A DNA stretch of 64,000 nt from the NCBI RefSeq assembly GCF_000143415.4, contig NW_003314281.1, positions 1,961,882 to 2,025,881 of the forward strand. The letters are read 5' to 3'. This document shows, piece after piece, positions 58,940 to 62,949 of the stretch. Within the stretch, counting starts at the first letter, position 1. Every line of letters begins with the position of its first letter. Below the pieces are notes generated by a model that saw only the letters and a program-made list of their open reading frames with translations, was not told the DNA's origin and searched no databases. Both the position numbers and the translations under genes were made by a program. The DNA comes from Selaginella moellendorffii (Eukaryota > Plantae > Lycopodiophyta).

Positions 58940-59539
58940 ATGGCAAGCTCTAATGTGCTCCTAGCTGCTCTTGTTGCTTTAAGTCTTTGTTTTGCAGCAA
59001 TCCCAGTCGCAGCAGCCACTTCCTTCAACGTTGTCAATCGCTGCGGGGGCTCGCTTAACATCATCGTCCGCGAGAACGCCGGAGGCCCCTCGATTGGAAC
59101 CTCCGGATTCACTCTCTCCCCCGGCGCATCTCGCCGACTAAGTCCTCCGAATCGCTGGGCGGGAAACATCGGCACTGGAACTCCTGGCCTCCTGGCCGAG
59201 TTCTCGATCAACAGCAACAGCAACCTTGATTTCTACGACATCAGCGCCGTGGATGGCTTCTTCATCGGCACTGGGATGAGCATCACTGGATCTGGCAGGG
59301 GTCTGACTTGCCGAGCGGATGCTGGAACTTGTCCTCCCCAGAACAGGAATGGGAATACTTGCGCCAGTCCCAACAGGAACGATCCAAACTCGCAGTACGC
59401 GCGGAACGTCCGTGCCTCATGCCCGGATGCTTATAGCTGGTCTGGTGACGACACCAAGACTTTTGCTACTGGAACCGGAGGAACTTTCAGCATTACGTTC
59501 TGCCCGTCATCAATCAATCTCTTTGCAGCAAATAAATGA
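58940..59539 (+). CDS. Short secreted thaumatin-like (PR-5) protein, intronless
   Basis: Signal peptide, SFNVVNRC, LAEFSI, DFYDISAVDGF, CPDAYS, ITFCP. Confidence 0.9.
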   Translation: MASSNVLLAALVALSLCFAAIPVAAATSFNVVNRCGGSLNIIVRENAGGPSIGTSGFTLSPGASRRLSPPNRWAGNIGTGTPGLLAEFSINSNSNLDFYDISAVDGFFIGTGMSITGSGRGLTCRADAGTCPPQNRNGNTCASPNRNDPNSQYARNVRASCPDAYSWSGDDTKTFATGTGGTFSITFCPSSINLFAANK

Positions 59540-60176
59540 ATTCCGGTCTTCTACTTGAGTTGTCTATAGTTATTATATCCACGGCCACCTCCACAGCGCG
59601 TCCATGTCGCACGGGGCAAGAATGTACCGCGCGTCATCCACGCGTCCCGCGCGGCCAAGTCCACGAGAATGCGGGGTTTGTTTAATTACATGGTATGATA
59701 TTTTATTGTAGGAACCCTGTTACTGAGATGATGGCTATGAGGGTAGAGGTAAACCGGTGTAGAATCGATGCCGAAGGGTCCACTCAACAAGGACTTTTAG
59801 TATGCAAAAATCTGCTCTTTTAAGTACCCTTTGTTCTGGTCACAAGCTCAGAAAAACAGCTTAAACTAGTCATTTAGGACATCAGTCTCCCAAAAAGAAC
59901 GTGTCGTGTTTAAACCTTGCCAATACTAATTTAAAATAGAATAAAGTAAACAATATTCTTAGCTCTAAGTTTTTACGAAGTCCAAACACAAAATAAATTC
60001 GGGAAGGAAATGCCGGGTCGCTCACACCATTGAAGATGGTAGTGTTGGACGCGCTCGGTTTTCCCATTATCATCCTCGATAAGAGTCACTTCAAGTCGGA
60101 TATCTGAGATACGGTCCACAAGCTTGATTCTGTGCGATCATCATAAAACCTGCACAGGAAAATAAAATACAGCGTC

Positions 60177-60281
60177 GGCACACTCCCTTCGCAGGAATTA
60201 TCCTGATCAGGTCGTGAGGGTCTCATCTCAGCCTACCCTTTCAGAAGAAAGACTCTTTTCAGGGCAAGCACCCCTGGTGCC
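60177..60281 (-). ncRNA. TPP riboswitch aptamer in the THI1 3' region
   Basis: Minus strand GGCACCAGGGGTGCTTGCCCT...AGGGTAGGCTGAGATGAGACCCTCACGACCTGATCAGGATAATTCCTGCGAAGGGAGTGTGCC: GGGGUGC, CUGAGA, CCCU, ACCUGAU, UAAU loop and GCG.AGGGA motifs, closing P1 GGCAC/GUGCC. Confidence 0.95.
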
Positions 60282-60456
60282 AGATTTCATCAGTTTCAAG
60301 AGCTTAAGCTTGCAAACCAAATTACCAAACAAGTAGTAGCAAACAGAAAAATACTTACTGAAAAAACAGAAAGTAGCAGCCTTATCCCATGGAGAACCAC
60401 ACGCTCGGAAGATGATTCACTCCACTCGTAAAACCAGAGATTTTTCGAGCGAGTGA

Positions 60457-61780
<1,324 letters not shown>

Positions 61781-61894
61781 CTACGATTGATCCTGGTCTC
61801 TACAAAGATTTGTCAATGTTAAACTTCGAGCGAGCATAAGTTGGAGCTCCTATCTCGAGACAAATCGCAAAATCACAGACAAAGATCGGGAATT

Positions 61895-62949
61895 TTAGTA
61901 GATTGTGCTGGCGAGAGACTTGACCTCTTTGGAGACGTCCGTGTAATCCTCCATGAAGCCTTGCTTTTCTTCGTCCTCCAGCTTGCCTTTGACAGGATTT
62001 AACAGCACCAGCATGCAGCAAGCCGGACGCTTCTGAGCGGCGGCGCCTCCCAAATCCTGAAAAGATAGAAAAGGAATGAGTACAAAGGTAAAAAAGGATG
62101 AGAAACAAAAAAGATATGATCGTGCCTCTTTTGAAGGAACGTAGATGTAAGGAATGTCCGACTCTTCGCAGAGTATTGGCAAGTGTGTGATTACATCGAT
62201 TGGTGAGATATCTCCTGCGATTACACAGAGCCTGCAAAGTAGAAAGATAGATCTGGCACTGTACGATTGCAAACTGGAAGCTCTTACCCCTTCTGTCCCC
62301 GGCGAACAGCTTTTACGACCTCCTTTACTCCCCTCCTGAGTTGCTTGTTCTGAGCCGCTGCAAAAACAAAGACCGCAAATCTTGTCACATAAGAGAGTAA
62401 TACTTGTAAGAAAAGATAACCTCAGACAGCGAATAGCAGCAGCAAGGCGAGAAAAATCCCACCTTTCAGCCGGTAATTCCAGAAAAATTAAGTCATCATA
62501 GGCCTAAGGACCAAGAGCAGGAAAAAAACTTAAGAACGAAACACAGGGCCTCAGCCAGCCTAAAGTCGCAGCACCAAGGCGAAGCAAAACTTCGTCTTTC
62601 AGCCGGTAATTCCAGAAAAACGAAACATCATCGGCCAAAAGAACAAAAAAAAAAGAGAGAGAAAAAAAGTGGAGAAATAAAGCAGAAAAGCCTCAGCAGC
62701 CAAATCGCAGCATCAAGGCGAAGAGATCCTCGCCTTTAAGCCGGTAATTCCAGAATCAAAACGATCCAAACATCATCGGCTATTGCACGCATTCATTCTT
62801 CCTTCTAGATCCATACCTCTCCGGACGAGCTTGAGCGTCTTCTTACAAAGGCGCTTGCCCGCTAGTGGCCTAGCGATGATCGACACATGCTGCCGCTTCT
62901 TGCGATCCTTTTCCTTGTCCTTCTTGTTGCCCTCGCCGTCACTCACCAT
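61895..62949 (-). CDS. NHP2: H/ACA ribonucleoprotein subunit 2 (NHP2, L7Ae family), 4 exons
   Basis: [57 protein letters not shown]. Confidence 0.95.
62418..62504 (-). ncRNA. Intronic box C/D snoRNA, copy A (snR77/snoR77/SNORD65-like)
   Basis: C box ATGATGA (62499-62493), guide TCTGGAATTACCG, D' CTGA (62469-62466), D CTGA (62425-62422), terminal stem. Confidence 0.88.
62547..62636 (-). ncRNA. Intronic box C/D snoRNA, copy B (snR77/snoR77/SNORD65-like)
   Basis: C-like ATGATGT, same guide, D' CTGA (62602-62599), D CTGA (62554-62551), GGCC/GGCC terminal stem. Confidence 0.88.
62689..62781 (-). ncRNA. Intronic box C/D snoRNA, copy C (snR77/snoR77/SNORD65-like)
   Basis: C-like ATGATGT, same guide, variant D' CTTA, D CTGA (62696-62693), AGCC/GGCT terminal stem. 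Confidence 0.83.

Follow-up and report, generated by a model that had tools for sequence, protein, structure and literature searches.

The 3' UTR of the THI1 (thiazole synthase) gene of the lycophyte Selaginella moellendorffii probably carries a functional eukaryote-type TPP riboswitch that works via alternative splicing, as the riboswitch of THIC does. The window, i.e. the whole stretch of DNA that was analyzed, comprises 64,000 nucleotides, and the coordinates given below refer to it unless another sequence is named. The host gene is a two-exon THI1 of S. moellendorffii, with the following coding features:

60677..61582 (-): THI1 exon 1, with the ATG at 61582 and 302 codons (translation, Pfam, protein match)
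60622..60676 (-): THI1 coding intron of 55 nt with GT..AG ends, absent from the RNA contigs of all four runs
60457..60621 (-): coding part of THI1 exon 2, with 54 codons and the TGA stop at 60459-60457 (translation)

Exons 1 and 2 were searched separately, and the database protein SELMODRAFT_163429 stood in for the steps that needed a whole protein. Exon 1 matches the Pfam family Thi4 (PF01946, E 9.4e-111), and its translation contains SSCGHDG, which is the active-site cysteine motif of cysteine-dependent thiazole synthases. In the database search, the exon 1 translation was 100% identical to SELMODRAFT_163429 of S. moellendorffii (356 residues), and 54/54 residues encoded by exon 2 were identical to residues 303-356 of the same protein.

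The whole window was scanned against Rfam at gathering thresholds, and a single match to the TPP family (RF00059) was obtained, at 60285..60166 on the (-) strand. This match covers the full model (1-105) and reaches 59.5 bits, against a gathering score of 54.3 (cmscan, E 3.9e-9). It lies on the sense strand, 172-291 nt 3' of the THI1 stop codon, in good agreement with the initial annotation, which had recognized a complete TPP aptamer approximately 175-280 nt past the stop. The 3' UTR is organized as follows:

60359..60456 (-): proximal 3' UTR, the 98 nt that separate the stop codon from the alternative donor (sequence; RNA contigs run through it)
60274..60358 (-): alternative 3'-UTR intron of 85 nt (spliced joint in runs X1, X5 and X9; retained in X1, X5, X7 and X9)
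60166..60285 (-): TPP riboswitch aptamer, RF00059 (cmscan, 59.5 bits; consensus fold)
60148..60170 (-): pyrimidine tract followed by UGUGCAG|GU, with the AG at 60151-60150 (sequence, cross-species comparison)
59907..60147 (-): distal 3' UTR of the long transcripts (RNA contig ends at 59907 in X7 and 59927 in X1)

P1 is intact in the cmscan alignment, and so are the ACCUGAUCAGGAUAAUUCCUGCGAAGGGA arm and the CUGAGA segment that belongs to the pyrimidine-sensor arm; the ACCUGAUCNGGNUAAUNCCNGCG pyrophosphate-sensor arm is present as well; together with the consensus fold, this alignment contains the helices P1-P5. The 5' strand of P1 is GGCAC at 60281-60277 and its 3' strand is GUGUGCC at 60183-60177. 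The aptamer lacks P3a and is thus of the eukaryote type, and its long P3 contains an insertion of 26 nt. The modest Rfam score is due to this insertion and not to changes in the core. A bacterial-style terminator platform was looked for and none was found, as expected for a eukaryote. The z-score of the whole fold of the region is only -1.74, and it was given no weight as evidence. Judged by its sequence and alignment, the segment 60285..60166 is a genuine eukaryote-type TPP riboswitch aptamer, and binding of TPP is predicted.

The expression of this region was analyzed with RNA contigs from four public runs (X1, X5, X7 and X9), each belonging to a separate S. moellendorffii study, which were aligned to positions 59300-61800. 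All four runs yielded contigs from which the 55-nt coding intron is spliced out (the joint in the contigs being 60620->60676, cut +1), and they therefore represent RNA. Run X7 provided a single contig, 59907-61436, which lacks the coding intron and in which the 3' UTR is complete and its aptamer intact. Mature THI1 mRNA therefore includes the aptamer, and THI1 transcripts do not always end upstream of 60281. The ends of the RNA contigs at 59907-59927 correspond to a 3' UTR of approximately 550 nt.

The alternative intron begins with the donor CA|GTAAGT, whose G is at 60358, and ends at the acceptor CACCAG|GGGTG, whose AG at 60275-60274 lies inside the aptamer; a branch-like CUGAU is found within the intron at 60293-60289. 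Each of the runs X1, X5 and X9 yielded two short contigs, one representing the retained form (60244-60387) and the other containing a 60359|60273 joint. This joint, present in 3/4 runs, skips 85 nt with GT..AG ends, and the internal acceptor is therefore used; splicing to it cuts away the P1 5' strand (60281-60277), so that the aptamer is destroyed. The contigs thus show that the 85-nt intron, which ends inside the sensor, is alternatively retained or removed. Both the GTAAGT donor and the acceptor within the aptamer had been proposed in the initial annotation, and they are joined in RNA as it suggested; of the outcomes that it had envisaged, retention is represented among the contigs of every run, and splicing into the aptamer among those of X1, X5 and X9.

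The conservation of the region was assessed by comparison with L001 (GL377828.1), the second scaffold of the published S. moellendorffii assembly, which is known to hold both haplotypes. This scaffold encodes SELMODRAFT_163429, has the same neighbouring genes, and contains an aptamer of its own (58.8 bits). From the stop codon to the end of the aptamer, the window and L001 differ at 2 of 291 nt (0.7%). The differences between the two sequences are distributed as follows:

coding exons: 0.6-0.9%
stop codon to donor: 1/98 nt
85-nt intron: 0/85 nt
rest of the aptamer: 1/108 nt (at 60168, outside the core)
distal 3' UTR: 10/193 nt (5.2%)
beyond the transcript: 6.5%

By this measure, the 3' UTR is as constrained as the coding sequence from its proximal part through the alternative intron to the aptamer.

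The analysis was extended to other plants, the genomic loci of the relatives being taken from the list of THI1 homologues. In Sphagnum balticum (74.2 bits) and in Riccia fluitans (69.9 bits), THI1 is followed by a TPP aptamer at a distance of 120-250 nt, and two moss-like THI1 loci from metagenomes also have one (68.1 and 72.5 bits). A scan of metagenome contigs with the plant-type core pattern revealed eleven further plant-type aptamers, 11/11 of them downstream of THI1. No aptamer was present within 2.5 kb of one Ceratodon THI1 copy, nor in the transcript contigs L011 and L016-L019. A U1 snRNA gene (124 bits; L003:5297-5455, + strand) is located about 1.3 kb downstream of the aptamer-less Ceratodon purpureus THI1 copy.

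The consensus fold of five THI1 aptamers, that of Selaginella and four of bryophytes, recovers P1-P5. In the alignment of these five aptamers the core columns are invariant and the sequence is nearly so, and two compensatory pairs can be observed in P3; the bryophyte cores are nearly base-for-base identical to that of Selaginella, whose P3 is longer. The layout of the splicing signals also recurs across the THI1 loci. A GTAAGT donor is found in the 3' UTR, 12-22 nt past the stop in mosses as against 98 nt in Selaginella, and a branch-like CUAAU, CUAAC or CUGAU (CURAY) precedes CACCAG|GGGUGC by approximately 16-22 nt. Moreover, in a Sphagnum-like THI1 mRNA from a metatranscriptome (L009), a donor 13 nt past the stop is spliced to the AG before GCUGAGA, which is likewise inside the aptamer and differs from the Selaginella acceptor. 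The half-aptamer that remains in L009 (L009:1283-1360) has changes in P5 and P1 when compared to L008:3589-4178.

It could be argued that the Selaginella aptamer is a decaying relic without present function, since its Rfam score is only 5 bits over the threshold, the Ceratodon copy mentioned above has no aptamer within 2.5 kb, and THI1 riboswitches have been lost in seed plants according to a genome survey (PMC11521341). We consider this very improbable: the low score comes from the P3 insertion and not from changes in the core, all core motifs are identical to those of the bryophyte copies, and the constraint between the haplotypes equals that of the coding sequence.

The closest well-studied system is the 3'-UTR riboswitch of Arabidopsis THIC (Wachter 2007 and Bocobza 2007, as presented in PMC5853225, PMC3597705 and PMC10226581). 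It shares with Selaginella THI1 a eukaryote-type 3'-UTR aptamer, an acceptor inside this aptamer and the coexistence of retained and spliced forms. In THIC, TPP unmasks a 5' splice site, and the resulting splicing removes a processing site and leads to long, unstable transcripts (PMC3597705, PMC10226581); the THIC-III transcript lacks 7 nt of the aptamer (PMC5853225). Selaginella differs from THIC in that the host gene is THI1, of the thiazole branch, in that the intron is only 85 nt long, and in that the donor has no evident complementarity to P4-P5. The TPP aptamers of fungal NMT1 and THI4 and of green-algal THI4 and THIC, which are in or beside an intron, control the choice of splice sites, as in the reading proposed here for Selaginella THI1; unlike in Selaginella, the introns are in the 5' UTR or the coding region, and upstream ORFs or premature stops are involved (PMC3597705, PMC10226581).

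For Selaginella THI1, both the dependence on TPP and the direction of the switch are inferred by analogy with THIC. High TPP would fold the aptamer and favour splicing of the 85-nt intron. Splicing into the aptamer, with its loss of the P1 5' strand and of the sensor, would yield an mRNA with a junction far past the stop and a long 3' UTR, possibly without a processing site formerly contained in the intron. Such an mRNA would be expected to be less stable, so that less of the single-turnover THI1 enzyme would be made, which would amount to negative feedback. An exon junction 98 nt past the stop codon makes the spliced form a candidate for nonsense-mediated decay. In mosses the donor is only 12-22 nt past the stop, and junction-triggered decay therefore cannot be the shared mechanism. 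No AAUAAA-type hexamer was found in the sequence of the 85-nt intron; the contigs cannot show RNA ends or poly(A) sites.

Whether P4-P5 could mask the 5' splice site was examined in four species with predicted duplexes. As a partner of P4-P5, the donor window ranked between 21 and 84 among 148-232 windows and was never the best one (38th of 148 in Selaginella, 21st-84th in the mosses), and the strongest pairing of the Selaginella donor region with the aptamer was only marginally better than that of shuffled sequences, 31 of 500 of which reached it. By eye, 10/12 positions of CAGUAAGUAUUU can pair with GGAUAAUUCCUG. Given the ranks and the shuffle result, THIC-style masking of the 5' splice site is not supported by the sequence alone, and we neither adopted nor excluded the P4-P5 masking of the donor. 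In the moss 3' UTR of L008, the best partner of P4-P5 is UUUGCAG|GUAUAUG (L008:3706-3729, -23.2 kcal/mol), located between the donor and the aptamer; this motif is not conserved in S. balticum.

The weakness of the predicted pairing between the donor region and P4-P5 would fit a different reading, in which TPP binds to the aptamer yet has no influence on the alternative splicing of the 85-nt intron, and regulation, if any, takes place elsewhere, e.g. in the choice of the 3'-end processing site. In X1, X5 and X9 the contigs lose about half of their depth on crossing the donor, which could be a sign of earlier 3' ends, contig depth being an unreliable measure. We regard TPP-independent splicing as improbable, because the acceptor sits inside the aptamer at exactly the place of the THIC acceptor (PMC5853225), the haplotypes do not differ in the intron, and the arrangement of donor, branch-like motif and acceptor is conserved across bryophytes. 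The preferred reading is that of a riboswitch controlling the splicing of the 85-nt intron.

The initial annotation had also placed an acceptor at 60150 (TTCCTGTGCAG) and proposed, as a third outcome, splicing from 60358 to 60150 with removal of the whole aptamer. The acceptor-like site TTCCTGTGCAG|GT is indeed present, with its AG at 60151-60150, 27 nt past P1 in Selaginella. At 19-27 nt beyond P1, Selaginella, a liverwort and four moss lineages all have a pyrimidine tract followed by UGCAG|GU, and the flanking sequence is not conserved. In the contigs of the four runs, no joint from 60359 to 60149 was found; the position of the motif was confirmed, and the proposed third splicing outcome was not supported. 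A hidden splice at 60150 had been suspected because X5 and X9 contigs break near 60146 and 60169, and the haplotype SNPs led to its rejection: the breaks lie where the SNPs at 60116, 60158 and 60168 predict them with 31-letter words, so that no hidden splice is implied. The match between the breaks and the haplotype SNPs also indicates that both haplotypes are expressed.

The pyrimidine tract and UGCAG|GU fit the plant 3' splice-site consensus, and the alignment shows GCAGGU to be the complement of ACCUGC(G), which is invariant and belongs to the P5 3' strand. A three-way switch can be envisaged on this basis, with retention, splicing into the aptamer, and a TPP-controlled second acceptor at 60151-60150 whose use would remove the whole sensor; without TPP, GCAGGU could be masked by the ACCUGC of the P5 3' strand. 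The persistence of the motif amid unconserved surroundings in Selaginella, four moss lineages and a liverwort, its complementarity to an invariant part of the aptamer and its fit to the acceptor consensus speak for such a switch. It nevertheless seems unlikely to us, since the joint from 60359 to 60149 is absent from four runs whose contig breaks are explained by haplotype SNPs, and since the motif is retained uninterrupted in the Selaginella X7 contig as well as in the moss transcript L009 (where it lies downstream of the splice). Moreover, the complementarity of the CAG|GU consensus to ACCUG may be coincidental. The conserved motif could represent an acceptor whose use is rare or whose products are quickly degraded, a strand in competition with P5, or both. 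A non-seed-plant THI1 platform distinct from that of THIC, where the conserved pyrimidine tract and UGCAG|GU would be either a competing strand or a second acceptor gated by TPP, is accordingly a doubtful proposition; if it were true, a three-outcome switch would have persisted since mosses, liverworts and lycophytes diverged. The two-way switch, with retention of the 85-nt intron or splicing into the aptamer, is the reading that we prefer.

The Selaginella THI1 riboswitch is real, and its kind has already been described in non-seed plants. The THI1 3' UTR of "ancient plant taxa" is stated to carry a TPP riboswitch (PMC3665906), and the 3'-UTR riboswitch of non-seed-plant THI1 goes back to Bocobza 2007, at least as this work is cited in PMC10226581, PMC3665906 and PMC11521341. 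In the genome survey, the THI1 riboswitches of embryophytes are located in the 3' UTR and those of chlorophytes in the 5' UTR (PMC11521341). Selaginella shares with these non-seed land plants, as far as the sources describe them, the gene, the 3'-UTR position and the lineage class (lycophyte), and nothing essential differs. The remark of the initial annotation that a THI1-linked copy is known from older plant lineages fits well with a lycophyte host, which belongs to one such lineage. The splice junction and the constraint between the haplotypes are confirmatory detail.

The position of the riboswitch in THI1 is of functional interest, since THI1 is a suicide enzyme that is used only once, and feedback control of its synthesis saves a real cost. 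Non-seed plants have both branches of thiamine synthesis under riboswitch control, and seed plants have kept only the riboswitch of THIC. The locus represents a clean lycophyte example at both the genomic and the transcript level, with a splice-into-aptamer design common to THI1 and THIC. It enriches the published picture without changing it, and the conserved acceptor-like motif past the aptamer is the point of remaining interest.

Additional observations were made in the surroundings of THI1. Immediately upstream of THI1, and in the same orientation, there is a gene of the NHP2/L7Ae family (61895-62816, -). A 46-nt piece of the distal THI1 3' UTR (60016-60061, -), of which no repeat was found within the window, recurs with two mismatches in another transcript contig of about 1.2-1.4 kb (X1, X7), and matching loose ends are present in X9. 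A thaumatin-like gene (approximately 58990-59740, +) converges on the 3' end of THI1 and has its counterpart at L001:4494-5093 (-). Over 59300-59736, an X9 contig has an 8-nt insertion and five SNPs relative to the window, and its source appears to be a diverged allele or copy.
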